Part shown: piece by piece, positions 23,938-64,000 of the stretch
Position numbering within the stretch: position 1 is the stretch's first letter
Layout: each line of letters opens with the position of its first letter
DNA from: Macrostomum lignano
Taxonomy: Eukaryota
NCBI GenBank assembly: GCA_002269645.1
Contig: NIVC01000540.1
Span: forward strand, 251,478 to 315,477
Length of the DNA stretch: 64,000 bases
Reading direction: 5' to 3'
Notes under the pieces: model-generated
Told to the model about the DNA's origin: nothing
Databases searched by the model: none
The model's input: only the letters and a program-made list of their open reading frames with translations
Position numbers and translations under genes: made by a program

Positions 23938-24428
23938 GACTGAATGTACATAGCAAATGTACAGTGTTTTGGAATAACTTTATTTATAGCCTTCTCTGCA
24001 CCCCGAGAGTGGAGAGGCTACGTTTAGCCATAACAGTTTAGTGAGAAATTCTAACCACTGCCCTCCCCTCTTCTGTATTGGCAAACTCTGCAGCAGTTTA
24101 ACACTGGATGGCAATTGGCAAATCGAGGCAATCCAGCATGGTTTGTAAAAGCGAAAGATTTATGAAAAGGCGATGCGATGCAATGCAATGAAATACAACC
24201 CTACTAAATTAGGCACACCATGGAAATTTTAAGTTTCTCTTAAAAGTACTTTGAAATTTAAATGGCCTAAGAAATGCGTATTTCCTTGGTTGTTAGACTG
24301 ATGCAGACTGCAGTGGAGCTGAAGATACACAAATTCCTTTCAGGGCTGCAAATTGGCAAGAAAGATGACGTGATCAAAGCATGAGAATAACGATGAGAGT
24401 AGTACGTCGCACAAACTGGCTTTCGAAG

Positions 24429-25896
24429 CAGGGATCGGCAGACTTTTACTTCAAAAGCCAGATAAAGAATCCAGCTTATGTGCGGGCCAGATGAGAGAGG
24501 AAAGGAGAAGGAATCGACTATTAGAAGAGAGGAGAGGCGAGAGGGGGATAAGAGAAAACATGGAAGATAAGAGGAGAGACAAGTGGTGAGGAGAGAGCAG
24601 AGAAGAAGTGAGGAAGAAGCGAGAGGAGGGGAGAAAGGAGGGAGAGGAGGTGTAGAGAGGAAGAGTAAAGGTGAGAAGAGGGGAGAGATGAGACAGAGGA
24701 TCGATGAGAGGAGAGTAAAGAAGAGTGAGAAGAGAGTAGAGATGAGAGAGCAGAAAGAAGATGACAGAGGGTCAAGAGGAGAGGAGAGAGTAGAAAGGAT
24801 AGAGAAGAGAGGAGATAAGAGGGGGAGAGAGGAGTGAGAAGAGAAGAGATAGAGATAAGAGAGGGGTGTAAGAAGAGGGGAGAAAGGAGAGATGAGATTG
24901 TAGAGATGAGACAAATGAAAGGAGAGATGAGAGAGTAAAGATGAGAGATGAAAAAGGTGAGAGGAGAGTGCAGAGAGACGAGAGAAGATAATAGAGGAGA
25001 GAGAGTATAGAAGAGGGAAGAGAAAATAAGAGAGGAGTAAGGAAAGAGAGGAGTCAGAAGAGGTGAAAGAGAAGAGTACAGAGGAGATAAGTGAGAGAAC
25101 GTATTAGAGAGTAAAGATGACAGATGAGAAGGCAGAGTGAGGGTGAACAGACGAGAGATGGGAGAGTAGAGAGAACAGAGGAGAGATAAGAGAGAAGAGA
25201 TTACAGAAACTAGAGGAGAGAGGAGAGACAGGGAGAGAAAAGAGGAAATAGGAGAATGAAGAGGGGAGAGAGTAGAGAGGAGAGGAGAGATGGGAGAGAG
25301 GAGAGGAGAGAGAGAGAGAGAGAGCGCAAAGCAGAGAGAAACGAGAAGAGATAAGAGAGAAAAGATAAAAGAAGAGAAAGGAGAGATAAAAACGCAGAGA
25401 AGAGAGGTGAGGGAAGAGACGAGTGACGAGGGGAGAGAGAAGAGATAAAACAAGAAAAGAGATAAGAGTTAAGAGAAGAGAAGAAAGAATAGAGAGGAGA
25501 AGGAAGAGACGAGAGAAGAGGGAGAGAGAGGAGAAGAGAGAAAACGAAAAAGTAGAGAGGAGAGAGGAGAGAGGAGAGGAGAGAGAAAAGAAAAGGGAAG
25601 AGATGAGATAAGAGATATGAAAGAGAAGAGAGATGAGGGAAGATACGAAAGAAGATAGGAGAAGAGAGGAGAGAGAAAACGAAAGAGTAGAGAGGAGACA
25701 GGAGAGAGGAGAGAATAGAGAAGAGACAAGAGATAAGAGAGATGAAAGAGAAGAGAGATGAGGGAAGATATGAGAGAAGAGAGAGGAGAGACGAGGGACG
25801 AGAGAGAAGAGAGGAAACAGAAGAGACGATAGAAATTTTAAAGGATCCAAGGGACATAGGGAGAGTCAGGGAGAGGCCAGAGTTTGCCAATACATG
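24429..25896 (+). mobile_element. hAT (Charlie-like) MITE with an expanded ~1.3 kb GA-rich interior
   Basis: 5' CAGGGATCGGCAGAC and 3' GAGTTTGCCAATACATG; both ends align with the copy at 55534-55871; purine tract 24490-25830. Confidence 0.7.
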
Positions 25897-40765: not shown

Positions 40766-41175
40766 AAGAGTTTACAGTATAGCGATTGACCGAGTTTACA
40801 GTAGCGATAGACCGAGTTTACAGTAGCGATAGACCGAGTTTACAGTAGCGATAGACCGAGTTTACAGTAGCGATAGACCGAGTTTACAGTAGCGATAGAC
40901 CGAGTTTACAGTACAGCGATTGACCGAGTTTACAGTACAGCGATTGACCGAGTTTACAGTATAGCGATTGACCGAGTTTACAGTAGCGATAGACCGAGTT
41001 TACAGTAGCGATAGACCGAGTTTACAGTACAGCGATTGACCGAGTTTACAGTACAGCGATTGACCGAGTTTACAGTACAGCGATTGACCGAGTTTACAGT
41101 ACAGCGATAGACCGAGTTTACAGTACAGCGATTGACCGAGTTTACAGTACAGCGATTGACCGAGTTTACAGTAGC
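40766..41175. repeat. 22/24-bp minisatellite in ATP9 intron
   Basis: GACCGAGTTTACAGTAGCGATA and GACCGAGTTTACAGTACAGCGATT units. Confidence 0.95.
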
Positions 41176-41517: not shown

Positions 41518-41564
41518 GTTTGTTTTTGCTTAATTTTCTCCGTATATCCTATGAAAAATTGTTG

Positions 41565-42415
41565 AGGAGCCTGTTGCAGATTAGTGAGGAGTCTGCAGAT
41601 TAGTGAGCAGACGGTTGCAGATTAGTGAGCAGACGGTTGCAGATTAGTGAAGAGACTGTTGCAGATTAGTGAGGAGTCTGCAGATTAGTGAGCAGACTGT
41701 TGCAGATTAGTAGGGAGACTGTTGCAGATTAGTGAAGAGACTGTTGCAGATTAGTGAAGAGACTGTTGCAGATTAGTAAGGAGCCTGTTGCAGATTAGTG
41801 AAGAGACTGTTGCAGATTAGTAAGGAGCCTGTTGCAGATTAGTGAGCAGACTGCTGCAGATTAGTAGGGAGACTGTTGCAGATTAGTGAAGAGACTGTTG
41901 CAGATTAGTGAAGAGACTGTTGCAGATTAGTAAGGAGCCTGTTGCAGATTAGTGAAGAGACTGTTGCAGATTAGTGAGGAGTCTGCAGATTAGTGAGCAG
42001 ACTGTTGCAGATTAGTAGGGAGACTGTTGCAGATTAGTAGGGAGACTGTTGCAGATTAGTAGGGAGACTGTTGCAGATTAGTAAGGAGCCTGTTGCAGAT
42101 TAGTGAAGAGACTGTTGCAGATTAGTGAGGAGACTGTTGCAGATTAGTAGGGAGACTGTTGCAGATTAGTAGGGAGACTGTTGCAGATTAGTGAAGAGAC
42201 TGTTGCAGATTAGTGAGGAGACTGTTGCAGATTAGTAGGGAGACTGTTGCAGATTAGTGAAGAGACTGTTGCAGATTAGTGAAGAGACTGTTGCAGATTA
42301 GTGAAGAGACTGTTGCAGATTAGTGAAGAGACTGTTGCAGATTAGTGAAGAGACTGTTGCAGATTAGTGAAGAGACTGTTGCTGATAGATTAGTGAGAAA
42401 ACTGTTGCAGATTAA
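41565..42415. repeat. 22-bp minisatellite in ATP9 intron
   Basis: GACTGTTGCAGATTAGTGAAGA units. Confidence 0.96.
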
Positions 42416-44018: not shown

Positions 44019-44388
44019 TTTGATGTGGCGCCACTCCCTTCTCCATTGGCTGTTGATGTGGCGCCACTCCCTTCTTCAGTGGCTGTTGATGTGGCGCCAC
44101 TCCCTTCTTCAGTGGCTGTTGATGCGGCGTCACTCCCTTCTCCAATGGCTGTTGATGTGGCGCCACTCCCTTTTTCAGTGGCTGTTAATGTGGCGCCACT
44201 CCCTTCTCCATTGGCTGTTAATGTGGCGTCACTCCCTTCAGTAGCTGTTGATGTGGCGCCACTCCCTTCTTCAGTGGCTGTTGATGTGGCGCCACTCCCT
44301 TCTCCATTGGCTGTTGATGTGGCGCCACTCCCTTCACCATTGGCTGTTGATGTGGCGCCACTCCCTTCACCATTGGCTGTTGATGTAT
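44019..44388. repeat. 33-bp minisatellite upstream of the RPL10 CDS
   Basis: GTTGATGTGGCGCCACTCCCTTCTCCATTGGCT, about 11 units. Confidence 0.95.
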
Positions 44389-44959: not shown

Positions 44960-45825
44960 AACTGCCTTGATAGTCTTATAATTCCTTATAACTGTCCTTA
45001 GAATCCCCTCATAACTACCCTTAGACTCCCCTCACAACTACCCTTAGAATCCCCTCATAACTACCCTTAGACTCCCCTCATAACTACCCTTAGAATCCCC
45101 TCATAACTACCCTTAGACTCCCCTCATAACTACCCTTAAAATCCTCTCATAACTACCCTTAGACTCCCCTCATAACTACCCTTAGAATCCCCTCATAACT
45201 ACCCTTAAAATCCTCTCATAACTGTCCTTAGAATCCCCTCACAACTACCCTTAGAATCCCCTCATAACTGTCCTTAGAATCCCCTCACAACTACCCTTAG
45301 AATCCCCTCATAACTGTCCTTAGAATCCCCTCACAACTACCCTTAGAATCCCCTCATAACTACCCTTAAAATCCTCTCATAACTACCCTTAGACTCCCCT
45401 CATAACTACCCTTAAAATCCTCTCATAACTGTCCTTAGAATCCCCTCACAACTACCCTTAGAATCCCCTCATAACTACCCTTAAAATCCTCTCATAACTA
45501 CCCTTAGACTCCCCTCATAACTACCCTTAGACTCCCCTCATAACTACCCTTAAAATCCTCTCATAACTACCCTTAGACTCCCCTCATAACTACCCTTAGA
45601 CTCCCCTCATAACTACCCTTAAAATCCTCTCATAACTATCCTTAGAATCCCCTCATAACTACCCTTAAAATCCTCTCATAACTACCCTTAAAATCCTCTC
45701 ATAACTGTCCTTAGAATCCCCTCATAACTACCCTTAAAATCCTCTCATAACTACCCTTGGAATCCTCTCATAACTACCCTTAAAATCCTCTCATAACTAC
45801 CCTTGGAATCCTCTCATAAGTACCT
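44960..45825. repeat. 23-bp minisatellite in RPL10 intron
   Basis: CCCTTAGAATCCCCTCATAACTA units. Confidence 0.96.
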
Positions 45826-45888
45826 ATAGAATTTGCCATAGCAACTGTAAGGCTCATAGCTGGCAACCCCGGCGAACATGTTGGCCAG

Positions 45889-46152: not shown

Positions 46153-46631
46153 ATGACGGCTAAATGCTAAGCGGAACTTGGACTAAGGATGCTGGTTGTG
46201 ACCTGTTGCCGACTGATTAATAATTGATTTGCAATGCGGATTAATTAAGCGGAAATAAAAAATCAATCCAAATTATTGGATAGCACTGGCTTTGGCAGTT
46301 GCCGGAATTGTCTTCTGGAAGCACTTACTGCCTGCCTGTTTATTTTTTTTATTTGATTTTAGTTTACTTAGAGCTCATGACAATAGTAGTCCCTCAAGCT
46401 GAAGGCTAGTACTGAAATGAATTCAAGTTCCTCCTCGTTATTACTTCATTAGTATGAGACAAATAAAATAGGCTATTGTTTTATATCGTTATTAGGTACG
46501 AATTAATACGATTTCTAATTTTATTGCATGCTCGATTTCTTCCAAAGCCGCGCTACTATTAGTAGGACAGACGTACACTACACGGATTGACGCTACATTA
46601 ACTGGTCTAATTTCCAAGCGATAGCTAGAGC

Positions 46632-47210
46632 ATGCAAGCTATCAAGTGTGTTGTAGTGGGCGACGGAGCTGTGGGAAAAACCTGCCTGCTCATCTCCTAC
46701 ACGACCAACGCCTTCCCCGGCGAGTACATCCCGACCGTGTTTGACAACTACTCAGCCAATGTGATGGTCGACGGCAAGCCCATCAACCTGGGCCTGTGGG
46801 ACACGGCTGGCCAGGAGGACTACGACAGGCTGAGGCCGCTGAGCTACCCGCAGACTGATGTGTTTCTGGTCTGCTTCTCCCTCATCAGCCCGGCCAGTTA
46901 CGAGAACGTGCGGGCCAAGTGGTACCCGGAGGTGAGCCACCACTGTCCCAACACGCCCATCATCCTGGTCGGCACCAAACTGGACCTGCGCGATGACAAA
47001 GACACAATTGAGAAACTGCGCGAGAAGAAGCTGGCCCCCATCACCCACCTGCAGGGCATGACAATGGCCAAGGAGATTAACGCGGTGAAGTACCTGGAGT
47101 GCTCAGCCCTGACTCAGAAGGGACTGAAGAACGTGTTTGACGAGTCCATTCGGGCCGTGCTGTGTCCGAGGCCGAGGCCGTCCAAGCGAAACAAGTGCGA
47201 CTTGCTGTAA
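46632..47210 (+). CDS. RAC1: Rac1 GTPase, intronless CDS
   Basis: [51 protein letters not shown]. Confidence 0.97.
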
Positions 47211-49756
47211 CAGTGCGCGACCCCAGGCCCGACTCATCCTCGGACACAGCTACTGTAGCTAACAGTTTTGTACATGCGTATAGATGCGATCGATATAAAA
47301 CTAGATTTATTATGCACTAATTCACCTCTGCACCGCCCTCTGTCTCCCTCTGCTGTACGCTAATAGCGGCGGCTTTCCATCGCCCTGGCAACCACGCTGA
47401 GATGCTGAATCTGTGTCTCTGGATTTAAAAAATAAGGCAATCTACCGTGTCTTTTTGTAGTTTGTTATTTAACTGATTATTGTCTGCAAAGAAGAAATCT
47501 GGTCGGCTGCATCTCTAATATTTATTTCATGCTCCAGGTAGTCTTAACATCGCTTTTATATTGCTCGTATATTATATATTATGATATTTTCTGCAATTTC
47601 AACTAATTTGATCGATTTGTGTCTTCTAGTGGCCTGACATACCATTTAACGGTGTTGTTCTTCTGTCCCCTCTACTCCCACAATGCTGTTTAAGTTTCTT
47701 TGCTCTATTTGGTAAACAGTTTCTGCTCTTAACTCATCAAAGTTTAAATTATGATTCTATTCAATATACGAGCTATATATATATTATATGTTCCGAGTTT
47801 TACCTGTCTCAAATATCCTTTCTAATTGTCTGTCACTTTTGCAACGCGTGCTTGCCTCCTGTTCCTTTCTCTCATGCGCACTCATGCTTTTTTACCATTG
47901 TACCTTAGGTAGCAAGTACATGATGTACCCGCAGCACCTGGGGTTGCGTAACATCTCTATTTACTATTCTCAGTCGGTTTTACTTGTACAAATAAATGGC
48001 AATAAAATATATTATATACATTATAGTCGCTTAAAAAATCTACTTATTCCTGCTTGAGTCTTTGCTACGACGATTGAGTCCAGTGCGTCATATTAAGTGG
48101 AATGGCCCAAATCTCATATTTTACTGGTTTCTTCTACTTATGATTTCTTTTTTGGATTGTTTAGAACAGTTGGCATGTATGTTGGTCAAAAGCTAGGTAA
48201 AAAATCGAGGCTATGATTTTCTTCGACCAAGGAGGGAATATAACACATTGATAAGCTAAGTAAAAAACAGTAAAATGCATAGAATCTCTACTGAAGGGTG
48301 TTCCAAAAGTTCCCTGAATGTCTACGAGTATTACAGCTCATCCATGAAAGGCAACTTTAATACGAAGAAGGTGTAGTTAAAATTATGTCAGTGTCATTTG
48401 ACATTTTCCATTCATGCGCCGCATCAAAACTGTCTGCACAAGTCAGCACTAGTGTTACACATCCTCAAATTTGTGAGAAGTCGGGGACTCAACAGGCTGG
48501 GATCATTAAGAGTTCCAGATCAGTTGGTAGATGTCCAATCGATCAGACATCTCTCAAACTGTCACACGAGCATTCGAGTTGGACTGGCCATCCTTAGGCC
48601 GTTCGATCTATTCGAACAAGTAAACAGTCGTTTTCCTAATGCTGTTCTCATCATGGATAGAGAAGAGATGCTCAGAAATCTTGACTCCACTCCATACGGC
48701 TGACTACAGGGCAAAAACTTGACTCCGTTGACTCTCAGGGCTGTAGAGAGAACTAATCTTTTAAAGAAATCTGCAGCCAAAAGCAAGCACTCGGTATGGG
48801 ATCGTTGCGCTGGCAACACCGGCTGCTCTGATACACAGAATCAGCAATTCAACCGGTTGGCCATAGACATTTTGACATTTTTCCACGAAAGTTGATAATG
48901 GGCATGCGACATTTAAGAATGTGGACCGATATAGTACTGAATTGTGCAGACATGATGCAGCGCAGCAATGGAAAATAATATTGACATTATTTTAACTACT
49001 CGTACACCTTCGTATGAATTTTGCATTTTATTTTACATGCAAGATTTAACGAACACATTAATGAGCTGCTCTATTAGACATAAAGAGAACTTTTGTGACA
49101 TCCTTCGTATTTTTAATCTTTTGCTTGGTAGAGGAGGTGCGAGAAAACAGGCAAGCAATGCGCCCAAGCGAGATGACGAAGTCTTGCTGCATTTTCAAAC
49201 TTTTCGTCATGTGATACGTTTTAGTGGGCAGTTATTAAAATGTGTCTAGTTAGAATTGTACTGTACGCTAGAGTTGTTGCGCGCACTCGCATGTGTACAC
49301 TTCATTCCTAGTAGTTAGCAGAAAATGGGGTGCACGAAAGCCTCGCTGGGGCTGTCGCTGTCGGTTAAGCCTGCGGTGCAGTTTATACTCGTACTATGTA
49401 CTCGTACATAGTCAATGGTCATGCTGCATGCACAGGAGTTTGTTTGTGTGAAATCTGAAGTTCTCCAAACAACTTTGATGAATAGGCTTTACAATATGGT
49501 TTTTTTATAGCGAGCATATCAGTGATGCTAGATTAGAATTACATAGCAGGCGGAAAGTATCCTTCACAGTTTCTGCTGCGCTCACATGGAGAGTCTCCAG
49601 AACATTTCAAATGTAGTTTTAATAGAAAACAAATGCGGTGTTCTTTCCGCCTACTGCTAACACAAGGTTACATGATTAGGGGGGGGGGGTAAAGTTACAA
49701 ATTTGATTATAATACCTGGGAAATCGTAATCGTGCTAAGAATTGGTCGTAGGAGGC

Positions 49757-50350
49757 CTACAGCAGGCCGCAGGAGAGTTGCTTCTTTTTCTTCTTGCCAT
49801 CGTCCTGCAGCGCGTGGAAGTGTGCCCGAACAGCCTCGGTGAAGACTGCGTCCAAATTCTTGCTCTTCTTAGCCGAACACTCCACGAAACGGTCGGCATT
49901 GATCTCTTTGGCCAGCTTTTCGCCTTCAGCTGTGGAAATCGGGTCCTTTACCGCTTCTCCGCCGACTTGATCGTCCCGGGTATCGGTCTTGGTTGCAACC
50001 AGAACTACCGGAGAATGGCTGAACCCGCCGAAGTGACGCAACTCGGGCACCCACTTGGCTTTTACGTTTTGATAGCTATCTCTGTTATCCACTGAATAGC
50101 ACAGCAAGAATACGTTGGTGTCTTTGTAACCCAATGGCCGCAGTCTGTCGTAGCTCTCCTGCCCGGCCGTGTCGTATATGGACAGCCTTACTGCCTTTCC
50201 GTCAACTGAAATGTAATGCGAGCTATCGTCGGCCACGGTTGGCGCGTACTCTTCCGGAAATGTGTTTAATGTGTAGACCAGGACCATGCTGGTCTTGCCA
50301 ACTGTGCCGTCGCCAACCAGCACTAACTTTATCGTGGTTATGTTCGACAT
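49757..50350 (-). CDS. Divergent Rho-family GTPase (197 aa from ATG at 50350)
   Basis: GDGTVGKT, YDTAGQE, TKTD, ECSAK, polybasic tail and CAAX CGLL; switch I YAPTVADDSS. Confidence 0.92.
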   Translation of the reverse strand: MSNITTIKLVLVGDGTVGKTSMVLVYTLNTFPEEYAPTVADDSSHYISVDGKAVRLSIYDTAGQESYDRLRPLGYKDTNVFLLCYSVDNRDSYQNVKAKWVPELRHFGGFSHSPVVLVATKTDTRDDQVGGEAVKDPISTAEGEKLAKEINADRFVECSAKKSKNLDAVFTEAVRAHFHALQDDGKKKKKQLSCGLL

Positions 50351-50783
50351 GTTTTGAGGCACTAGCGTGCTGATACACTCGAATGTGTTCTTATCGGCGT
50401 TCAAAATACTGATACGAGCTATGCTATTACAAACTTATCATAGATACGAGTATTTATAATGCTAGACGCACCCATTTACCTGCACTAGCACAGCTTCGTA
50501 CCCCTTGCGTGCCCCCTCTGTGTTAATTCGTCTAACAGCAAACTATGAAAAAAGCAAAAGGGATGGGTAGGGCGGAAAAATACCCCGCCACCACCCAACA
50601 CTACCCCCGAGCACAATGCCGAGGGTTTTAAATACAAAGCTCAAACCTAAGAAGACGACTTGTCTCAGTTCTTCAAAGCTTCTGTCTGTTGTGGCAGTGG
50701 GGGTAGCAGGCGTGTAAGGTAGTTGGCGTGAGAGGTTATCAGAGACTACCGATAAACGACCTGTTACAGGTTTAAAACTATGG

Positions 50784-51195
50784 CTGGCTATTCGAGACAC
50801 CATTTCTAAGAACAGCATAGTGTTCATTGCGATTGTGCTCAACGAACTGCTCATGGTGGCCTGCACTGTGCGCACCTGGCATTGGCTGATGTCTGTAGCG
50901 GAGCTGCTCAGTCTGCTCTGCTACCTGCTGGCTGTTGTTGTGCTGCCTAATTATTTTGGTTTGTTTGCGCTTAATTTGTCTGTGTATTCCTGGAGATTGT
51001 TGCAGATTATCGAGGAGACTGTTGCAGATTAGTGAGTAGCCTGTTGCAGATTAGCGAGGAGACTTTTGCAGATTAGTGAGCAGCCTGTTGCAGATTAGTG
51101 AGGAGACTAGGGATTAGTGAGAAGATTGTTGCAGATTATTGAGGAGACTAGTGATTAGTGAGAAGATTGTTGCAGATTAGTGAGGAGACTGTTAC
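50784..51195 (+). pseudogene. Frameshifted duplicate of the ATP9 TM exon (from ~41340) with part of its 22-bp intronic minisatellite
   Basis: Near-identical [38 protein letters not shown]; 4-bp deletion near 50810; followed by TTGCAGATTAGTGAG units. Confidence 0.9.
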
Positions 51196-51467
51196 TACGT
51201 AATGCGCAGTTAAGTATTGATTTTTAGGCAGATTTGATGCAAAAAACGCAAATTATACTACTATCTGAAAATGAAGTAAGTAGTATATGAAAACGCTATC
51301 CTAAGCGTGTTATATACGTAGCATACCTCAATATGTACTGGTGTATGTACATTAATCCCATGTGAAATGGCACGGCTCAGCTCATTGGTTTTATGAATCT
51401 ATTTTGCCATTCTTAGATGACTGTGTAACAATATGTGTGACAGAGATTATAAAATAGATTATCAAAA

Positions 51468-51740
51468 CCAAAGATTCGAGCTGTGTCATGTATTTTTTTT
51501 TATTTTTAGGGTACAGGAAATACACGTAGGATAAAAATTAACAAAGAATCCTGATTTTCTGACCGGAAAGCTTAATGAATATCAATAGAGCTACGAGGTA
51601 TAAGAAAAGCACAACATATCAACAGATAAACATTGGATTTGCGTCCTATCGAAAGTAATAATTTTTGTGCTGAAAAATCAAAAACTTCTATCTCCGTGGG
51701 GTATTTTTCGGTGAAAAGTGGCCTTCAAAACATTTTCCAT
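51468..51740 (+). repeat. Diverged direct copy of the ATP9 3' region 42835-43100
   Basis: Shared TTCGAGCTGTG..GGTACAGGAAAT..ATGAATATCAATAGAGCTA..GCACAACATATCA. Confidence 0.85.
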
Positions 51741-52014
51741 AGATTTTGAGTGTCGCGTCTTGTATATACTCGTAAGTTGCTTTAGTTGTCATTGTCAAAA
51801 ATCAGCCTTTAGGATAATGCAATCGTCTATGGTTAAACCATGAGCATATTCCATTTATTTTTTCACTTAAACTTCAGGATAATGATTTCAAACTCGGGAT
51901 AATGGACACCTATTTTTAGAACAAAACAGCAAACACCAACAACAAAGGATTATCGCTATGGAAAGTTAATTGTGCAGTATCAATATGGCGCAATTGTCAT
52001 AGTGCCGAAGACCA

Positions 52015-52330
52015 TTACAGATTGCAATTGTTGAAAGTGCAGTTGTTCATAATAAAGATATTCCGACCGTTCATCTGACGACCATCAGACACGCTCACTG
52101 CTTCTTGCACGATGGAACTTTGAATGCTGATGTCAGCAGGCATTGTTACTTGACCGTGGGTCGCGGCGCTTTGTCCCATGTTCAACGCACGCGACACTGC
52201 ATCGCTGCATTGTTGCAGGGACTTGTCCCGTTTAACTGCCAGGTAGCGCCGGATCGTGCTCTCGGACTTTTGACCCGTGATAGCCATGATCTCGCTCATC
52301 GAATGCCCAGCCGATTCCAGGTCTCAAGAA
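52015..52330 (-). mobile_element. Crypton-like tyrosine recombinase C-terminal remnant
   Basis: L.SAG....IMAITGQKSESTIRRY (box II TGH...Y, with H>Q) and the FIMNNCTFNNCN tail typical of DUF3504/Crypton proteins; upstream stop. Confidence 0.6.
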
Positions 52331-52690
52331 AGTGCAAGAAGTTCAAAAAGCCTTTGTTATCCTTCATGTCCTTCTGAGATGTGGAAAGTCTTGAGATCCA
52401 ATTGAGTTCGCTGCTAGATACGTTGGCTAAACTTTCGACAGGCAGATTGCCCCAGTTGATCGGATATGACGTCTGGTTCTCCATGGCCAAGCGAATGTAG
52501 CTATTTACGTTTTATTCTCTCTTTCTCTCCACATCTCCTTCCTTTCCACCCTCTTGACCCCCAGCCTGTTTGCAACTTCGTTGTCTATGGCCCAAACTCC
52601 AGTAAACCACCTCAGTCTTTATGTCTCTCTCTCCTCGGTAACCCCTCTCTCCTTTCGATGCCCTTTTTGTCTATGGCCCCACTGAAATTC

Positions 52691-52809
52691 GACAATGCGG
52701 TTATTCGTAAGTGAGACTTTAGGATAATAGTCCTATGCTCACTCGTGCGCTGCACTCATGAGCCGGACTATTATCCTAAAGTCTCACTTACTAATAACCA
52801 ACCATTGTC
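52691..52809. repeat. Long hairpin/inverted repeat, probable end of the Crypton-like element
   Basis: Perfect 27-bp arms 52707-52733 and 52765-52791, extendable to about 43 bp with few mismatches. Confidence 0.9.
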
Positions 52810-52959
52810 CTTGGTATTAAATTGACTTCAAGCTCCTCTTTATTACTTTTGTAGTAATAGGCTTAGTGTCTTATATCGTTATTATCGACAAATTAATCCT
52901 TATGTTTTTTAATTCTTCTTTCAGATTAATCTCTTTCAGAGCTGCGCTACTGTTAGTAG

Positions 52960-53634
<675 letters not shown>

Positions 53635-54469
53635 ATCTTTTGCTTTGTCGAGGGGGGTTATCGCGTCAAAACAGGCAAGCAATATGCCCTAGCGAGAAGA
53701 CGGAGTCTTGCTGCATTTTCAAGTTTTCGTCATGTGATCTGTGTTTTAGTGGGCAGTTAAAAGTGTCCAGTTTAAATCTAAGATTTTGCACAGTTGCTAC
53801 AGAACTTGTGCAAAGAATTCGCGCACTCGCATGTACGTACACTTCATTCCTAGTAGTTAGCAGGAAAATGGGGTGCACGAAAGCCAATTGCTCGAGCTTT
53901 TGCTGTTGGTACAGCAGTTTGCAGTACAGTTTATACACGGTCAATGGTCATACGCAGGAGTTTGTTTTTTGCAATTTAAAGTTCTCAAAACAACTTTGAC
54001 GAATAGGCCGCTTTACTATTAAGCTGTTTATTAAGTGCGAGCATATCAGTGATACGTGATGCTACGGGCAGATTGACTTACATAATAGCTTAGAAAGTAA
54101 GCTTTGTAGTTTCTGCTGCGCTCAAATGGGAAGTCCTGAAAACATTTCAATGGTGGTTTTATTTTCTATTCTAGAATTTATAGTCCTTGATGAGATTTAT
54201 GTGCAGGAACTCGTGCTAGTTCGATTTAAAAACTGAAACGGATAAAAATTTGTTAATTTTTTAATACCCTATTCGGGCGAATCAACTGGTTCGTCAAATT
54301 ATTGTCAATCCTCAATGTTTTTTTTACTTACTGTAAGTCTTGCAGCAAAAATGTGACAAATTTTCAGCGGGATTTCAGCATTGTAGACTGGAGAGTTTGC
54401 ACTGTTCTATTCGTGAAAAGCAAAAGCAGTGTTCTCTCCGCCTACTGCTGGCTCGTAACGCAAGCTTGG

Positions 54470-55150
54470 TTACATGAGTAGAGGGGCATAAAAGTTGCAA
54501 ACTGGAGTATCATACATGAGCAATCGTAATCGTGCTAAGAATTGGTCGTAGGAGGCGAACAGCAGGCCGCAGGAGAGTTGCTTCTTTTTCTTCTTGCCGT
54601 CGTCCTGCAGCGCGTGGTAGTGTGCCCGTACAGCCTCGTTGAAGACGGCGTCCAAGTTTTTCCTCATCTTAGCTGAACACTCGACAAAACGGTCGGCTTT
54701 GATTTCTTTGGCCAGTTGTTTGCCTTCAGCTGTGGAAATCGGGTCCTTTACCGCTTCTCCGCCGACTTGATCGTCCCGGGTATCGGTCTTGGTTGCAACG
54801 AGAACTACCGGAGAACGGCTGAACCCGCCGAAGTGACGCAACTCCGGCACCCACTTGGCTTTTACGTTTTGACAGCTATCTCTGTTATCCACTGAATAGC
54901 ACAGCAAGAATACGTTGGTGTCTTTGTAACCCAATGGCCGCAGTCTGTCGTAGCTCTCCTGCCCGGCCGTGTCGTATATGGACAGCCTTACTGCCTTTCC
55001 GTCAACTGAAATGTAATGCGAGCTATCGTCGGCCACGGTTGGCGTGTACTCTTCCGGAAATTTGTTCGATGTGTAGACCAGGACCATGCTGGTCTTGCCA
55101 ACTGTGCCGTCACCAACCAGCACTAACTTTATCGTGACTGTGTTCGACAT
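54470..55150 (-). CDS. Divergent Rho-family GTPase, paralog of 49757, with lost stop and a 29-aa extension past the CAAX
   Basis: TAG replaced by TTC after CGLL; ORF otherwise intact, 226 aa from ATG at 55150. Confidence 0.8.
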   Translation of the reverse strand: MSNTVTIKLVLVGDGTVGKTSMVLVYTSNKFPEEYTPTVADDSSHYISVDGKAVRLSIYDTAGQESYDRLRPLGYKDTNVFLLCYSVDNRDSCQNVKAKWVPELRHFGGFSRSPVVLVATKTDTRDDQVGGEAVKDPISTAEGKQLAKEIKADRFVECSAKMRKNLDAVFNEAVRAHYHALQDDGKKKKKQLSCGLLFASYDQFLARLRLLMYDTPVCNFYAPLLM

Positions 55151-55533
55151 GTTTTGAGGCACTAATGTGCGCTCGAATGTGGTTTAGAACTTTGCTTCTT
55201 ATAGCCGTAGTAAATCAAAGGGAACTTTCTAATAGCTGTGGTCCTTTCGCGCACAGAAGTTTCTGAATTTCTCCGACATGCTGAACAGCTTCTTATACCG
55301 GGCGTGCATGCAGCTAATTGTCTGTTCATCTTCTCATAAACTTGCGTTCTTTAGTTTCTAATTATAACTGAAAATTTCTATAGCTCAACATTCGTGCATA
55401 CGAGCAAGTCTGGCCCGCATTGCAGCTTTAATTGAAGCGGATTCGAATAAATACGAGTAGTACAGTCATTTAGTTTTCCTGAGCATTGCAATGCAGCACC
55501 TTTAAACTGAATCAAAAAGTGGGGTATCTGGAT

Positions 55534-55871
55534 CAGGGGTCGGCAAACTCCGGTCCGCGTTCCCACATACGGCCCTCAAAGCGTCTCTATGGCCCTCGGG
55601 TCCTTTAAAACTTTACAATAGCAATCTGGCTCGCTTAAGGTTAATGTCTGTCCCCTCTTCCCTTTCCCCTCTCCCTCTGTCTCTCCCCTATCCCCTCTCT
55701 GCTCTCTCCATTCTCTCGTCTTCCCCCCTATTCTCTTCTCTGTCTTCTTTCTTATCTCTTCTCTCATCCCATCTTTAAATTCACTCTTCTATCATCTATT
55801 CCTTTTCCTTTCCACTCTCATCTGAGCCATGAGCTGGATGCTTCATCTGGCCCTTGAAGTAAAAAGTTTTG
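55534..55871 (-). mobile_element. hAT (Charlie-like) MITE, short copy of the 24429 family
   Basis: CAGGGGTCGGCAAAC terminus; flanks ATCTGGAT and CTAGAT resemble the NTCTAGAN target; ~170 bp CT-rich core. Confidence 0.75.
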
Positions 55872-57087
55872 CCTAGATAAATATGGGATCGTAATACGTA
55901 TCATGCATTGAATGACTAGCAAATCCATCTCTCTACAAGCACGTCTTTGTATTCTTTGAAGTTGAAATATCGATCCAAATGATTCTTTAGCAGACTGACG
56001 GTGGTTAAAGCTTTTCTTTGACAGTGCTAACCTTATCAGCTCCTGGCTTGCACTGCAAACTTATGTTTAAAGTTCGATTTCCTCGATTTGCTTCAAAGTT
56101 GATCGATGCCCGAACCCACCCTACCGATTGATAAGTCACCCCCAAAAAGTTTGAAATCCCTGTAAGCAGTGCATGATGAGCTGAGCAGGAACTGAACTGA
56201 AGTGAAATTCGATCAGGTCGGAAGAGGTTCACAAGGACAATTTCTGCACAGCATGCATCATTGCATTCGCTCACTTTTCTGTACATATAGATAGCTCAAA
56301 CCAGCATAGAATACAATCTCAACTTTTGGCAACTCTGACATTTGTACTGCCAGCCTGCAATTTCTGACATACTGGTTACTTGATAGTTTGTCTGTTCGCT
56401 ATTCGTTGACTAAAGTCTTCTCGAGTTCAGGCCTATGATTATAGTTGAAGAAATTAGCACAGTCATTATCTTGTCTACCCTTGCTGTGTATTTTTCTCTT
56501 TTTTATTCTCTCTGTGGTGTGGCTTATCTTTGTTCTATCAAATGTACTGACTCTATTTATCTGTGACTTTCCACATTGCAGCTAGGCATACACGTAACTT
56601 CACTCAGTCAAATGCTTCATTTCTTCGAAATGGTGTCTAGAGCCATAATCCGAGCACTGCATGATGCATTCAAAATTCAACGCACTAGTCTCAATAGATT
56701 AGCCATTTTTACGAAGTATGCCATATAGTCTACTTTTGATTACTACGCTCGTATCATATTCTCTATGATACGAGCTCGACAGGCTGAACCAGTGAGAGAA
56801 AAGTGAGAATACTTTGCTAAAAAGCGGATACAGTCCGTGCATCTCAAGGATGTGCAATGTTCGGTATTTCGTCACGTTTATTGTTGCTATGTGGCTGTCA
56901 AGAGCGCAAGAAATGTATTGCCCATTCATTCAGTTAATACTGTAGTAGCTACGACGCGTACTCAGCGTGAGCACTGTACGAATATATTTGGGCTGAGATT
57001 AGCAGTAATGTATAAAATTACACACCGAAGCATAGTTAACAAACGATTTAAAAAAATTTAGTTTTTTACAGAAACTTCTCAGTGGAG

Positions 57088-57714
57088 TTACAGCAGAGTG
57101 CAAGGTCTCGTCTTATTATTTTTCTTCTTCTTGCCGCAGATGCCTTTAGCCATTAGGTGGGCTCGCACAGCCTCCTCCATAACCTGCTGCAGGCCGTGCC
57201 CAGTCAGTGCTGAACACTCTACGTACGTTTTGGCGCCAATTTCTGTCGCCATTGCTCGTCCCTCGCTGCTGTCAACCATGGTGATATTTTGCCGTTTCAG
57301 ATAGTCGATGGCAGCCGAGTCAGTACGAAGATCGGCTTTGGTGGCCACTAAGATTATGGGCACGCTTGGGCCATAGTGCCCCAGCTCTGGGCGCCACTTA
57401 TCGCGCACATTCTTGAAGCTGTTCCGGCCGTCAACTGAAAAGCACACTACGAACACGTCGGTGTTGGGATAGCTGAGTGGTCGCAGTCTGTCGTAGTCCT
57501 CCTGGCCTGCCGTGTCCCACAGCTGCAGTCGCACTGGCCGGCTGTCTACTGTGACGTCGTACGAGAAGTTGTCAACAATCGTTGGCACATAAGTCGTCGG
57601 GAAGCCTTTCTTCATGTAGACGCTTAGCATGCAGGTCTTGCCAACGGAGCCATCGCCAACTAGAACGACTTTGAGCGTATCTACTCTGTTGCTGCTGTTA
57701 GCGTTATTAGACAT
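57088..57714 (-). CDS. Divergent Rho-family GTPase (208 aa)
   Basis: [55 protein letters not shown]. Confidence 0.93.
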   Translation of the reverse strand: MSNNANSSNRVDTLKVVLVGDGSVGKTCMLSVYMKKGFPTTYVPTIVDNFSYDVTVDSRPVRLQLWDTAGQEDYDRLRPLSYPNTDVFVVCFSVDGRNSFKNVRDKWRPELGHYGPSVPIILVATKADLRTDSAAIDYLKRQNITMVDSSEGRAMATEIGAKTYVECSALTGHGLQQVMEEAVRAHLMAKGICGKKKKNNKTRPCTLL

Positions 57715-58955
57715 TTGCTATTGCCTTTGGCCAGCCACTCTAAACTTTTGGGGCTGGGGGAGTCTAAGTTGCAACTCGTATAGAGTATAGAGCTAACCAG
57801 GTGAAGATAGAGCAGAGTGTGTCTCGTTTGGTTTATTTGGAAGGTTTCTCGTGGAAGCAAGGTAAATAGCACAGTAATGGCGTATGTTCTGCAAATAGCG
57901 TTCCTGCTTTTATGTGCAGTGCGCAAGAAATTCGGCTTCTCTCTTCACCAGCGTACTGGCTGCGCCCGTGTAGAGTGCCGCAGGCGAGCGGTTTGTCCAA
58001 ACCCTCTTCCACTCTGTCCCTGTCTGTACACTCGAGAAAGGCATACCTCGGGGCTCTTTCAAACAGAAAACTTTTATTTTGGCTCTGACTAATTAGGTTA
58101 AATTTAGCGTAAGAGTTCTGTCCATTATTTTCTACAGCATCTATCATTTAAACTTTTTTTCTCTGAGTAATCATGACCCCTCGAGCGAAGATGCTTGCTG
58201 CTACTGAGTGCACGTTGGTCTCGAGAAAGCTCTCTCTTTTCTCTCTTCTTTCCTGTCTTTTCTTTGATAACTTAAGGAATATTGAGTCGTTACTGTTTGC
58301 TTCATTTCTTAGCTTGAAGCTTAGATGACAAGAATGTTTACTTGGAGATGACATTTCCTAGTCAAATCAAGTTCTCCATTTAAATGTAGACAGAATAAAA
58401 ACTTCTGTTAAAACTGTCCATTTTTTTCTTGAATAGCTTGAATAGAGTTAAAACATGAAACAATTTAAAGCAACGGAGAAAACACTGACCCGTTTGTTTG
58501 CGCCTGTAGCTGCAGTAACATGTAAATGCAAATTTGTTATTGTCATTTGCGCATCTTATCTCACAACTAAGCATCGGGCAACAGTCGCTGCCGCCCTTGC
58601 TCCGCAAACTGCGCAGAGACTTTGCATGCTGTTTCGCTTTTTGGGGATGCAATGAGCCGTTTTGGTTTTCGAGGAGCGGACGAGCAAGCAGCAAGTCAGG
58701 AAAAATTAATTCCGCACAAAATTTCCTAATTTGGTTTATTTTATGCAAACGCGTGCGTACGACGAACTAAACGCATGTCCGCCAACAATTAACGACAGAG
58801 TATATGTATTATTCTAGTTCTGCTTTAAAATTGTATGCACAAACACAAAGATGCTGAAATCCATGGTGAAAAGTCTACTGAAAGATTGGAATGATTAGTG
58901 CGTCATGATTTCTGTAAATTTATGGTCCATATGTTCCTGTTTTCCAGCTTAGTTC

Positions 58956-59537
58956 TTAGAGAACGCTGCAGCTAGGGTTTGGCTTCCTGTGCGGCTTTGT
59001 TGGCATCATCACTGCTCGAATGGCCTCATCGAACACAGTTTTAAGTCCCATCTGCATGCGAGCTGAACACTCCAGGTACTTAACCGCGTTGATCTCCTTG
59101 GCTAGTGCCAGGCCCTGCGCCTGAGAAATCGGAGCCTGATTCTTGCTCTTTAGTTTATCAATGGTATCCTTTTCCTCCCGAAGGTCCATCTTGGTTCCAA
59201 CTAGCACGATTGGCTTGTTAGGACAGTGGTGGCTCACCTCCCGGTACCATTTGGCTCGGACATTCTCATAGCTGGCTGGGCTTACTAAGGAGAAGCAGAC
59301 CAGGAACACGTCCGTATGCGGGTAGCTCAGCGGCCTCAGCCTGTCGTAGTCATCCTGGCCTGCCGTGTCCCACAGGCCTAAGTTGATGGGCTTGTTATCG
59401 ACCATGACGTTTGCTGAGAAGCTGTCGAACACTGTTGGAATGTACTCGCTTGGAAAGGTGTTGGTTGTGTAAGAAATCAACAGGCAGGTCTTGCCGACAC
59501 CTCCGTCGCCGACAACAACGCACTTGATTGACTGCAT
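58956..59537 (-). CDS. Second Rac-subfamily GTPase (193 aa)
   Basis: [51 protein letters not shown]. Confidence 0.95.
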
Positions 59538-60652: not shown

Positions 60653-60754
60653 TAGTAGTAGTATGTTTTAAGGGGCTGCGCCACACTTAATTGCTCGGGC
60701 GCATTGCGCGCCAGCTCGCTGGATGACTCAGCCCCTTAAAACATACTACTACTA
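60653..60754. repeat. Perfect 26-bp inverted repeat starting with (AGT)3, candidate Polinton terminus
   Basis: TAGTAGTAGTATGTTTTAAGGGGCTG at 60653-60678 and its exact reverse complement at 60729-60754. Confidence 0.9.
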
Positions 60755-61260
60755 CCAGGAGGTCATGGATTCAAGTGGGTGTGTGATATGTAAATATACA
60801 TATATCTGTGAGTGAGGGTGTTGAGGGTGAGGGCGTGTGGGGGCATTGGCCTGTGGTATATTTCTCAGAACACAGAATTTCCGGAATTTTTATACTTTTA
60901 AAAAGGGGGGGTGCCCTCGCCCTCATGCCCTCACTCATTTTGAAAATCACTAAAAATAAGTGAAAAATGACTAAAAACAGGTGAAAATGGTCTGAAAACA
61001 GCGATTTTTTGTGATTTTCTAATTTTTTTAAAAAGTGCAATTTTCACGATTCCAGCTCTAAAACCATGAGAAAAGTTGGATTCACGGGTCAATTTAATGC
61101 AATTTCAGGTATATACAATATGAAAGTGTCATCTAATTTGACGATAGTAAATTTTATATATATAAAATGGCCTTCAGTAAACCATTATTTCTAGGAAATG
61201 CTTTAGATATTCAGTCAGGTATAGACATAATTGACAATTAGGCATAATCGCCATATAAAA

Positions 61261-62001
61261 ATGAATGATAAAAATGAACACATCTATCCTGTGGTTGAGC
61301 TGCATGAAGCAGATTTGAGGGAGCGGGACTATTTCAATCAGAGAAAGGGTGAAATCAAAGGCAGTATTGAATGCATTACGAAAGATCTTACAATTTATAG
61401 CAAAAAGGTAAAAAAGTACAAACGACAAAGTAGCAGGATAAATTGGATCAACATTGTGACAGGAAATGTAAGTCTCTTGGCTGCTACAGGAATTGGCATA
61501 GCAACATCGATACTGACATTGAATCCCTTAGTTATTGGAGTAGTAATCGGGGCAATGAGTGGTTTTGAAGCTGTAAAATCCACGTCGTTGTTTGCAACTG
61601 TGAAAATTCATTGCCAAAAGCAGAAGGCAAAATACATTGTTCTCAGAGATCTGGCCAATAAATACAGAGAGAGATTATATATTTACTCCCAAAAAGCAGT
61701 TGATGATTATAGATTAACTCTTGAAGAGGTTCAAGCAGCTACTGCAATTTATTCAGAATACAGAGAGAAAAGAGATCAATTGTTAGACGCCGGTGTTGCG
61801 CCTGAAGAAGTTAACCATTCGGAAGTCGTTGATAAAATTCTCAAAGAGAGTAGACTTGGTCATTCAGCGAAGGAAAAAATTAAAAAGGAACTGCTGGAGA
61901 AAGATCTGAGAGAAAAATTGGGTCTAGCCGATAAGCCAAAAGAGTACTCGGCAACACTCAATCTTCAATCAAATGCTCCAACTGCACCCCCCTATGCTTG
62001 A
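61261..62001 (+). CDS. Polinton accessory protein with a central hydrophobic (about 2 TM) segment
   Basis: IYPV...KKYKR, then hydrophobic VSLLAATGIGIATSILTLNPLVIGVVIGAMSG and ..DD..LTLEE; resembles a common invertebrate Polinton ORF (recognised from memory). Confidence 0.6.
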   Translation: MNDKNEHIYPVVELHEADLRERDYFNQRKGEIKGSIECITKDLTIYSKKVKKYKRQSSRINWINIVTGNVSLLAATGIGIATSILTLNPLVIGVVIGAMSGFEAVKSTSLFATVKIHCQKQKAKYIVLRDLANKYRERLYIYSQKAVDDYRLTLEEVQAATAIYSEYREKRDQLLDAGVAPEEVNHSEVVDKILKESRLGHSAKEKIKKELLEKDLREKLGLADKPKEYSATLNLQSNAPTAPPYA

Positions 62002-62026
62002 GTCTGTTTAATTTTTTTTCTTAAAA

Positions 62027-64000
62027 ATGGAAAGGAAAATACCAGCGGCCTCTTATGAATATGATCTCGACACCGTTGAAGAAATTCACGGTTTAATCTC
62101 CCCAATTCTTTCTAAACATTTGATGGCTAGAGATTCAATAAAATACAGAATTTCCTTTGTCGCAGAATTTTATAAAGGAACTACCGACAGTTGGATTGAG
62201 TTCCAATATCATTCAAAGTATCGAACTTTGTTAAATCTGCTTCAAGTTGAAGATAGTATTGAAAGTACAATAAGGGATGTTCTGGATGAATTTGATGAAT
62301 GGAAGGATAGTTTTAATGAAAGGGGATCAGGATATTATTTTGTTAAGTTAGTAAAGATTGTGTTGAAAGTTGTTGGCATTAATCAGTTGAAAGGAGGAAC
62401 TTATATTCTAATTCCAATTAAATCAAACGCATTAGTAAATGTTAAGAACACTAAAGACAATAGGTGCTTTCTCTGGTCTATTTTAGCAAAGCTCCATCCT
62501 GTGAAGGAACATAGATATAGAGTTGGTAAGTATACACAGTATATAAATGAAATAAACTTAGGAGACGTTAAATTTCCAGTGGACATTCGAGATATCTCTG
62601 AGATTGAAAAGTTGAACAGTCTTCATATAAATGTGTTTGGATTGAGGGATATAAATACTAAAGAGTCAATATATTCTATTCGTCTGACAGAAGATTACGA
62701 CAACCCCAATGTTATTGATTTACTACTTGTTGAAAATCATTATTGCTTAATAACAGACTTGTGTTTATTCCTCACGTCCCAAAATTACAACAGGGTTTTT
62801 CTTTGTCGAAAGTGTCTTCAAGTCAAATACTCCCAGGATGCACTGGATAATCATAAAGCAATCTGTAATGACTTCAAAGTGTCAATTGAAGTTCCAAAGA
62901 TTGATAAGAGGATATTAAAGTTTAAAAACTACCACATGAGTGTAAGAAAACCATTTGTGTTTTATGCAATATTAGATTATGTAACGATGGATGATAAATC
63001 ACTAGAGCTATCACAATGGACACTTTTTACTAGTTCCGACTATGAGGACATTATAAAATCAAATATTATTTTAAATACTACAGTGGAATCATTCGTTGAA
63101 ACCGTAATAAAAAAGTTTGAGCATATAAAAAATGAAATGGATAGATATAAACATCCAAGATTAAGTGATGTCGAAGAGACTGATTACAAAGCGGCAGAAC
63201 AATGTTTTCTCTGCTCAAGGCCATTTGTAGATAGTAAAAAATTCGAGAGCATAATCACTACAATGGTAAATATCGCGGCGCAGCATGTCAATCATGTAAT
63301 ACCAAAGAGGGCAAGGCGAATCAAACAGTACCGTTGTTTCTCCTGAATGAATCTGGAAAAGATCTAAACTATTTGATAGCTCCATTAACACGAATGAATA
63401 ATAAAAAATATATATTGGATTTTATTTCTAAAACATCGGAAGACCATGTTGCAATTAAGTTGGGGAATTATACCAGTGGTGTTGTGTTTTTAGATGGATC
63501 TAGGTTTTTGGAACCACCATTTACACTCTCTAAAGAAGAAATAAAATATTTGCCACCCAGTGATACAACAGCAGTAATTAGAAAGATTTACTCATTTGTC
63601 AACGCTTTTGAGAAGTTTCGATCAACATTTTTGAAATATTTCAAGATAGATCCTGCGTATTGCTTTTCCCTTTCTGGATTATCGTGGCATGTGGGGTTGA
63701 AATATACTAATGTGTGAATTGGAATTACTTGGTGATAAAGAAATGATATCCATGGTAGAAAGTGGTATTCGCGGCGGTTTCTCTGGAGTTCTTGGAGATC
63801 GATATAAAAAAATGAATAACAAGTATTTAGAAAGTTATGACAGCAATTCTGAATCGTCGTACATGCTATACTTGGACAAGAATAATTTATATGGTGAAGC
63901 AATGATGAAAAATCTACCTGTGGAGATTTCAAGTTTGAAAATGATCTAGAGTATCACAAGAATATTCCTAATGGCAGGGGTTGTTTTCTTGAAGTTGACC
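62027..64000 (+). pseudogene. Polinton protein-primed DNA polymerase B with three frameshifts (~63238, ~63713, ~63922)
   Basis: ERGSG, NVKN..DNRCFLWSILA.LHP, C2H2 finger, EndoVII-like REHNHYNGKYRGAAC (after frameshift), IDPAY, GIRGG, motif A YLDKNNLYG, then GDFKF...FLEVD. Confidence 0.88.

Follow-up and report, generated by a model that had tools for sequence, protein, structure and literature searches.

The Rho subfamilies of animals are commonly regarded as few, stable and dispersed, and the locus described here raises the question of how six genes of the Rho family came to stand within 13 kb of one another in the flatworm Macrostomum lignano. The stretch of DNA that was analysed, called the window in the following, is the terminal 64 kb of contig NIVC01000540.1 (GCA_002269645.1, according to the literature the M. 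lignano assembly Mlig_3_7). Six Rho genes within 13 kb cannot be chance. We consider it probable that they constitute a lineage-specific tandem cluster that arose by duplication of a founder gene and that now comprises four genes for working molecular switches and two decaying copies of a duplicated pair. We read the cluster as a largely local, Rac-derived expansion, and in the literature searched on Rho and Rac in Macrostomum and on the distribution of RhoL and Mtl no description of it was found.

The six genes are open reading frames (ORFs) of 192-230 aa located between 46.6 and 59.5 kb, named here, in order, Rac1a, RhoD1a, Rac1b', RhoD1b, RhoD2 and RacB. All of them match the Pfam Ras family (PF00071, E = 2e-43 to 2e-52), and a tblastn search of the window with Rac1a and RhoD2 as queries returns exactly six Rho-type loci and none elsewhere. 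Each coding region is a single uninterrupted ORF, collinear with human RAC1 across the GTPase domain. The positions, the strands and the lack of coding introns given in a first-pass annotation of the window are thus confirmed. Three contigs of the same assembly were compared, namely NIVC01000540.1, which holds the window, and its sister contigs NIVC01001849 and NIVC01000686, which carry the same locus in the same gene order at 97-99% identity.

In a comparison of the window with itself by BLAST, positions 46467-47050 pair with 52856-53447 (90% identity), 49051-49526 with 53568-54053 (76%), and 49666-50364 with 54468-55164 (93%). Since these blocks pair the stretch of Rac1a and RhoD1a with 52856-55164, the six genes are not independent of one another: unit A, consisting of Rac1a and RhoD1a (about 46.5-50.4 kb), was copied as a block to give unit B (52.9-55.2 kb), which has since degenerated. 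The end of unit A at 50387 is seen only against the sister contig NIVC01000686, where the RhoD1 block extends to this position. The coding regions of the two units are 95-98% identical, their flanks 70-76% with insertions and deletions, and the synonymous divergence (dS) between the units is approximately 0.1. The earlier description of six diversified genes therefore has to be modified: six ORFs are present, but they represent four distinct gene types and one degenerate duplicated pair.

The degeneration of unit B takes a different form in each of its genes. Over codons 1-139 Rac1b' matches Rac1a at 97.6% identity; thereafter an internal deletion of about 180 bp, correctly recognised before as a truncation of a Rac1 gene, fuses codon 140 to the old 3' untranslated region (UTR). 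From there 61 further codons are read. The protein has no G5 box, alpha5 helix, hypervariable region or CAAX box, and its alignment to the Pfam Ras profile of 162 positions ends at position 142. RhoD1b shares about 95% DNA identity with RhoD1a over the common coding region (93% across the 700-bp BLAST block) and retains intact G1-G5 boxes in the alignment. Its stop codon TAG has changed to TTC, which places the CGLL motif internally and adds 29 residues from the former 3' UTR. It had been taken for a divergent Rho protein lacking a CAAX box; the protein indeed has no terminal CAAX box, but CGLL is still encoded and has become internal only by stop loss in a copy of RhoD1a. Judged by these lesions, Rac1b' and RhoD1b are most likely decaying copies. 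A side observation concerns RhoD1b on NIVC01000686.1, in which eight substitutions are clustered at nt 124-139 (DDSSHYIS to DTSSYHVS, in switch I and strand beta2); such clustering suggests a micro-conversion or a complex mutation, not a series of separate point changes.

The sister contigs indicate that the locus is not static. Unit B is present once in the window, once in NIVC01000686 and twice in NIVC01001849, there with a period of 5047 bp. The extra RhoD1b of NIVC01001849 is a chimera, which is of RhoD1a type to nt 106 and of RhoD1b type from nt 278, with an upstream flank that matches the flank of RhoD1a; such a copy is the signature of unequal crossing-over. Rac1a and Rac1b' have few variable sites, and these form a mosaic common to both genes across the contigs. 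The part of Rac1b' that is homologous to Rac differs by 1.7-3.6% from contig to contig, compared to 0% in the gene's own tail and the next 0.8 kb. The two genes hence undergo concerted evolution by gene conversion. The ratio of non-synonymous to synonymous divergence (dN/dS) of Rac1b' is low (0.03-0.12, with 16 synonymous and 3 non-synonymous differences among contigs in codons 1-139); gene conversion from Rac1a explains this without a function being required.

The spacer between units A and B contains an array of a 22-bp tandem repeat (unit TGAGGAGACTGTTGCAGATTAG). Repeats of the same family are found at 41563-42414 in an intron of the neighbouring P4-ATPase gene, and the corresponding spacers of the sister contigs carry them as well. 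The repeat in the sister-contig spacers could promote unequal crossing-over.

The locus thus combines tandem paralogs of differing ages (dS from approximately 0.1 between units A and B to saturation), copy-number variation, a recombinant copy, two degenerate copies in the window and two GTPase-dead members on the sister contigs. Together with the segmental duplication, the gene conversion and the lack of close relatives of RhoD1 and RhoD2 elsewhere (see below), this bears out the proposal of the first-pass annotation that the locus evolves by lineage-specific birth and death.

The four intact genes differ strongly in their distance from canonical Rac. Over residues 1-178, Rac1a (GC content at third codon positions 0.82) shows 92% identity to human RAC1, and the P-loop, switch I, switch II and all key residues are the same. 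RacB reaches 81% identity with human RAC1 as well as with Rac1a in this range (77-78% with Rac1a at full length) and carries the substitutions N39S and Y40F. Apart from these two changes in RacB, both proteins show the characteristics of the Rac subfamily, that is, the sequence YIPTVFDNY, W56, and more than approximately 75% identity to Rac1. RhoD1a is only 51% identical to human RAC1. Its likeliest start is the ATG at 50350, whereas the longer ORF of 215 aa opens at a TTG. G12, T35, DTAGQ with Q61, TKTD and SAK are intact; F37A, N39D, Y40S and W56Y are substituted, the Rho insert is diverged and 4 residues shorter, and the protein ends in KKKKK...CGLL. RhoD2 is 58% identical to human RAC1 and keeps G12, T35, DTAGQ, W56, TKAD and SAL. 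It differs by F37V, Y40F and a 12-residue extension at the N-terminus, and ends in KKKK...CTLL. By signature residues and level of identity, RhoD1a and RhoD2 fall outside the Rac subfamily, despite W56 in the latter, and on sequence grounds they are best filed as Rac-derived or Rac-related proteins, not as Rac. The G1-G5 boxes are intact in Rac1a, RacB, RhoD1a, RhoD1b and RhoD2 (Pfam Ras E <= 4e-47), a Rho insert of Rac1 length (13 residues) is found in Rac1a, RacB and RhoD2, and each of the four intact proteins ends in a CAAX box, CSVL in the case of RacB and CDLL in Rac1a.

The predicted structure of RhoD1a is that of a Rho protein. The AlphaFold2 model (pLDDT 86.9, pTM 0.86) has Rac1 as its top Foldseek match (TM 0.92), and Rac1, Rac3, RhoA and RhoG are matched at TM scores of 0.88-0.93 (target-normalised). 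The insert is modelled as a short helix at residues 123-126 followed by coil, with pLDDT of approximately 76-79. Sequence searches of the PDB likewise rank Rac1 first for RhoD1 and for RhoD2, in the latter case with 226 bits versus 205 bits for RhoA.

Substitutions among the three contigs separate the intact genes from RhoD1b. Rac1a shows 17 synonymous and no non-synonymous differences (P = 2e-11 under neutrality), in agreement with the earlier claim that one housekeeping Rac is kept. For RhoD1a the counts are 12:7 (P = 2e-4) and for RhoD2 4:1 (P = 0.012). RacB is identical on all three contigs and yields no such signal, while its comparison with Rac1a gives a dS of approximately 1.0 and a dN/dS of 0.155. 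Comparisons that involve RhoD proteins have a dS of 1.6-2.0 or are saturated and not computable; where dN/dS can be computed for the old paralogs it amounts to 0.15-0.25. In RhoD1b the counts are neutral-like (3:5, P = 0.27). From the counts and the dN/dS of the old paralogs it follows that the four intact genes are constrained, and that RhoD1b behaves like a pseudogene. The gene models of Mlig_3_7, which were built by RNA-seq-guided transcript assembly, show a similar division: models exist for Rac1a, RhoD1a (on all three contigs), RhoD2 and RacB, RhoD1b has none on any of the three contigs, and Rac1b' is represented by a single odd model of 103 aa that spans two copies. This pattern is a weak hint that unit B is silent. 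Look-ups of the exact proteins were used as a further proxy for expression. RhoD1a (as 215 or 197 aa) is unrecorded, and RhoD2, Rac1a and RacB are recorded on NCBI genome contigs only; this absence is uninformative because even Rac1a, which is surely expressed, has no transcript-derived contig.

One copy of RhoD2 is an exception to the intact frames. On NIVC01000686.1 (20172-20438 of the fetched stretch L004) a CCC run has lost 1 nt (TATCCCAAC to TATCCAAC) and the protein is cut to 88 aa, which could be a real null allele or a homopolymer error of long-read sequencing.

To judge from their conserved catalytic residues and from selection, the products of the four intact genes are most likely functional GDP/GTP switches with a geranylgeranyl anchor at the terminal CAAL. 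Residues 37-40 of Rac are needed for the binding of CRIB and other effectors, and W56 sets the recognition by Rac-specific exchange factors. Because of this known biochemistry of Rac and the changes at residues 37-40 and W56, we infer that RhoD1a, and RhoD2 to a lesser degree, are membrane-anchored switches that have been rewired to other partners.

The intron-free state concerns all eight family members known from the window and the sister contigs, each of which has a single-exon coding region. M. lignano genes have a mean of approximately 5 introns, and bivalve Rac genes consist of five exons (PMC4669188); since all members of the cluster are nevertheless intron-free, a single removal of introns from the founder, through retroposition or intron loss, probably preceded the tandem duplications. 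Retrotransposition has been mentioned as a contributor to the growth of the Rho family (PMC4669188). Within 700 bp downstream, five of the six genes have no run of A of at least 8 nt, and the exception, an unconvincing run of 8 nt 145 bp below RhoD1b, does not change the result that no poly(A) remnant follows any gene; target-site duplications, another hallmark of retrogenes, were not searched for.

The following history would account for these observations. A founder Rac gene without coding introns would have been duplicated repeatedly in place. Older duplications, now saturated at synonymous sites, would have given rise to Rac1a, RacB, RhoD1 and RhoD2, while the pair of Rac1a and RhoD1a was later copied as a block into unit B, and unequal crossing-over and gene conversion are still reshaping the locus. 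Rac1a would act as the conserved housekeeping Rac. RhoD1a and RhoD2 appear to have kept the catalytic machinery and to have rebuilt the surfaces for effectors and exchange factors (switch I residues 37-40, the strands beta2-beta3, which in RhoD1 would include the change of residue 56, and the insert), and their partners probably form a set that differs from that of Rac1 or is narrower.

Several points weigh against this history. The contigs are only 1-2% apart, and the tests of selection rest on 5-19 substitutions per gene. The single-exon founder is deduced from its descendants, in which no hallmarks of a retrogene remain. The lack of a gene model is weak evidence for silence: the neighbouring P4-ATPase gene also has no model on NIVC01000540.1, although it is modelled on the sister contigs. 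The low dN/dS of Rac1b' could mean function instead of conversion. Finally, RhoD1 scores 16 bits better on a profile of insect RhoL than on the Rac profile and has a position adjacent to arthropod RhoL in a weakly supported neighbour-joining (NJ) tree, and is perhaps not a purely local invention.

Table 1. Positions of the array genes, the duplication units and associated repeats in the window, with the evidence for each.
Feature	Position	Strand	Evidence
Rac1a, canonical Rac1, 192 aa, CAAX box CDLL	46632..47210	+	ORF, Pfam Ras 5e-52
Duplication unit A (Rac1a and RhoD1a, convergent)	46467..50387	.	self-BLAST; sister-contig comparison
RhoD1a, divergent Rho GTPase, 197 aa, polybasic stretch and CGLL	49757..50350	-	ORF, Pfam Ras, alignment
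22-bp tandem-repeat array, spacer between units A and B	50992..51193	.	TRF
Duplication unit B, degenerate copy of unit A	52856..55164	.	self-BLAST
Rac1b', truncated Rac1 copy; Rac homology 53029-53447 (codons 1-139)	53029..53634	+	ORF, Pfam, BLAST
RhoD1b, stop-loss copy of RhoD1a, CGLL and 29 extra residues	54470..55150	-	ORF, TAG -> TTC
RhoD2, second divergent Rho GTPase, 208 aa, KKKK and CTLL	57088..57714	-	ORF, Pfam, alignment
RacB, second Rac, 193 aa, ends in CSVL	58956..59537	-	ORF, Pfam, alignment
Hairpin element at the end of collinearity with the sister contigs	60653..60754	.	contig comparison

The last of these points leads to an alternative ancestry: an older protostome subfamily, RhoL-like or Mtl/MIG-2-like, would be represented in the flatworm by RhoD1, and perhaps by RhoD2, as a fast-evolving orthologue that has kept its place beside Rac. 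In a database of 5.8 billion proteins neither RhoD1 nor RhoD2 has a relative of more than 60% identity outside M. lignano. The best outside matches of RhoD1 are 43-56% identical and consist of arthropod RhoL and assorted Rac proteins; arthropod RhoL provides the top named matches with 52-56% identity, and the margin of RhoD1 on the RhoL profile is similar to that of RhoL-like proteins of a centipede, a springtail and Daphnia. RhoD1 and RhoL also have in common a shortened Rho insert, SAK in the G5 box and the motif LLCYS. However, the identity of RhoD1 to RhoL is hardly above its identity to Rac1 (50%) or RhoD2 (49%), the deletion in the insert differs in length (4 residues in RhoD1, 9-10 in RhoL), and no orthologue from a mollusc, an annelid or another flatworm is found among the best 120 matches of RhoD1. 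RhoD2 favours the Rac profile by 32 bits (-32 bits for RhoL versus Rac), and its best outside matches, at most 60% identical, are ordinary Rac proteins as far as they are single-domain proteins. No protein called Mtl or MIG-2 occurs among the named best matches of RhoD1 and RhoD2. The NJ tree places some of the paralogs: Rac1a groups with human RAC1, RacB lies within the Rac clade, and RhoD3 and RhoD4, two further genes introduced below, group together (bootstrap 82), but RhoD1 stands beside the arthropod RhoL group and RhoD2 is unplaced, with support below 40 for both. The human CDC42, RHOA and RHOG references in the tree, the profiles and the alignment are provisional sequences; human RAC1 agrees with the PDB alignment. 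On balance, we regard an older protostome origin of RhoD1 or RhoD2 as unlikely, and a local derivation from Rac as the better account.

A second alternative concerns unit B, whose genes could be functional novelties: Rac1b' would be a decoy or regulator without membrane anchor that soaks up partners of Rac, and RhoD1b a cytosolic, unprenylated form. In each of the four copies on the three contigs both frames have stayed open and the tails are identical, codons 1-139 of Rac1b' show the excess of synonymous differences given above, and a truncated Rac duplicate of 110 aa in oyster, CgRac-2, is reported to be highly expressed (PMC4669188). At such low divergence, however, open frames are expected by chance, and the excess in Rac1b' is explained by conversion from Rac1a. 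Moreover, guanine binding and the fold depend on the G5 box and the alpha5 helix, both of which Rac1b' has lost, and RhoD1b is both neutral in its substitutions and without a model on any contig. Functional unit-B genes are decidedly improbable in our view, and decay remains the favoured interpretation of both. The suggestion that the paralogs explore new roles does not apply to these two of the six genes, which are most likely decaying duplicates.

The array does not end with RacB. On both sister contigs two further Rac-like ORFs follow, RhoD3 and RhoD4, and on NIVC01001849 these are succeeded by a caspase gene; NIVC01000686 ends before that point. In the window, the sister contigs can be followed as far as 60653, where a hairpin with 26-nt arms marks the end of collinearity, and the remaining AT-rich 3.3 kb to the contig end (60654-64000) has no counterpart in the fetched stretches of the sister contigs. 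The ORFs of this tail at 61.2-63.9 kb (256, 439, 127 and 79 aa) have no Pfam match, so that a suspected resemblance of one of them to a motif of protein-primed DNA polymerases is not borne out by Pfam. A mobile element that inserted here or a break in the assembly probably accounts for the stretch 60653-64000, and the continuation of the array (RhoD3, RhoD4 and the caspase) is cut off in the window by the insertion and the contig end.

In RhoD3, which carries G12R and lacks switch I, the DTAGQ motif reads DIGCF; RhoD4 carries G12E, T58L and Q61S. A CAAX box is absent from both. RhoD3 carries the motif GMTMAK.IN, specific to M. lignano Rac1a, and is therefore locally derived from Rac1. Both ORFs are 100% identical between the two sister contigs, hence give no signal of selection, and may be pseudogenes. 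RacB, too, is nucleotide-identical (100%) on the three contigs, with flanks that differ by 0.8-1.2%. Constraint on synonymous sites, recent homogenisation or mere chance could each account for the identity of RacB, RhoD3 and RhoD4 between contigs.

The caspase domain on NIVC01001849 is complete (QACRG, Peptidase_C14 4e-49). A good splice acceptor is present at its exon, in which no in-frame ATG occurs, and the annotation joins RhoD3, RhoD4 and the caspase into one model of 804 aa (NIVC01001849.1, 168359-172622; 4313-8576 on the minus strand of the fetched stretch L005). A frameshift in the caspase was considered and rejected, as the correct frame is open and aligns with caspase-3-like proteins of M. 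lignano. No exon path for the 804-aa model was found with consensus-like donors; with any GT-AG pair there are 123 paths, all with at least 5 introns. A search with the caspase exon for proteins that combine Ras and caspase domains retrieved only six caspases (34-42% identity, five of them from M. lignano) and no fusion. We know of no caspase with a Rho-type pseudo-GTPase prodomain as described by this model, and a true fusion of RhoD3, RhoD4 and caspase seems quite unlikely to us. If true, the fusion transcript would tie the Rac cluster to the control of cell death.

The same genes form the basis for viewing the entire cluster as a rapidly diversifying module of defence or cell death, in which GTPase paralogs act together with the adjacent caspase. 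The continuation of the array into two GTPase-dead Rac derivatives and then an intact caspase, the joint model and the caspase exon without a start codon of its own are compatible with such a module. All three genes are, however, located outside the window, the ORFs of RhoD3 and RhoD4 both end in stop codons, and a model that needs at least five introns can be fitted by many exon paths. The closest caspase-3-like database entries of M. lignano also start without an N-terminal Met and look 5'-incomplete, such that a small 5' exon of the caspase's own is possible, and there is no evidence for positive selection or induction by infection. We therefore judge a defence or cell-death module to be very improbable. 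The first-pass annotation had ascribed new signalling or defence roles to the paralogs and had put the locus forward as its best candidate for an undescribed system; nothing points to defence, and the tandem cluster is a real but fairly ordinary expansion of a well-known family of switch proteins that establishes no new class of system.

The weakest alternative, that the tandem repeats are an assembly artefact in which haplotypes or homeologues of the neopolyploid M. lignano were stitched together, is suggested by the high redundancy of Mlig_3_7 (180 Mb of duplicated blocks at >=95% identity) and by the possible sequencing error in one sister copy of RhoD2, but it is extremely improbable given that units A and B differ by a 180-bp deletion, a deletion of approximately 1.6 kb and a stop loss, that their non-coding identity of 70-76% is far beyond the 1-2% divergence between contigs, and that the A-B arrangement recurs on three independently assembled contigs.

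Upstream of the array are located the genes for the P4-ATPase and RPL10. Both are multi-exon genes, as had been noted before for the ATPase, and their introns are rich in tandem repeats, among them long arrays with periods of 23, 33 and 24 bp; the positions noted for these repeats and the block described next are 44984-45832, 44020-44386, 40768-41173 and 24267-25968. A low-complexity block at about 24-26 kb shows strong strand skew (GC skew 0.61, AT skew 0.52). At 6221-12265 on the plus strand the window contains an unbroken ORF of 2014 aa with matches to Helitron_like_N (1e-29), PIF1 helicase (7e-27) and DUF6570, which appears to be an intact Rep/helicase gene of a Helitron. Seven spacer ORFs of the array have no Pfam match.

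As the locus demonstrates, a local and still recombining cluster can grow from a Rac gene, and this cluster pairs two constrained paralogs with rebuilt effector surfaces with copies that are decaying or catalytically dead. RhoD1a and RhoD2 are candidates for species-restricted signalling switches. For M. lignano as a model of stem cells and regeneration there is also a practical side, as near-identical partial copies of Rac1 can confound RNAi, in situ probes and the mapping of reads. The analysis is of use for annotation and as a modest case study in evolution.

Among known systems, the Rac subfamily itself (human RAC1, C. elegans CED-10) shares with the intact cluster genes the Rho fold, the G boxes, the Rho insert and the CAAL terminus; RhoD1a and RhoD2, with the identities given above, are both well beyond the normal conservation of Rac. 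Arthropod RhoL (Drosophila RhoL/Drac3) resembles RhoD1 as a divergent Rac-like GTPase with a shortened insert and SAK, but keeps F37, N39 and W56, in addition to the differences in insert length and the low identity already described. Rnd and RhoH are GTPase-deficient atypical Rho proteins, and the substitutions in RhoD3 and RhoD4 are of the same kind that abolishes GTP hydrolysis. In sequence they are unrelated to Rnd and RhoH, however, and RhoD3 is visibly derived from Rac1a. The absence of introns has a counterpart in RHOB and RHOG, vertebrate Rho genes with single-exon coding regions that were born by retroposition, although several introns are the rule in their family. Unlike these, the M. 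lignano copies are arranged in tandem and no poly(A) remnant is detected; the tandem arrangement argues for duplication at the DNA level after a single loss of introns. A parallel in arrangement is found in bivalves, likewise spiralians with recent local Rho duplicates: oyster has a truncated Rac copy that misses G boxes (CgRac-2) and a tandem pair of Rho genes (CgRho-1 and CgRho-2) (PMC4669188). The M. lignano cluster is larger (six genes in the window, eight to ten on the sister contigs), is intron-free, and contains two old, strongly diverged, yet constrained paralogs.

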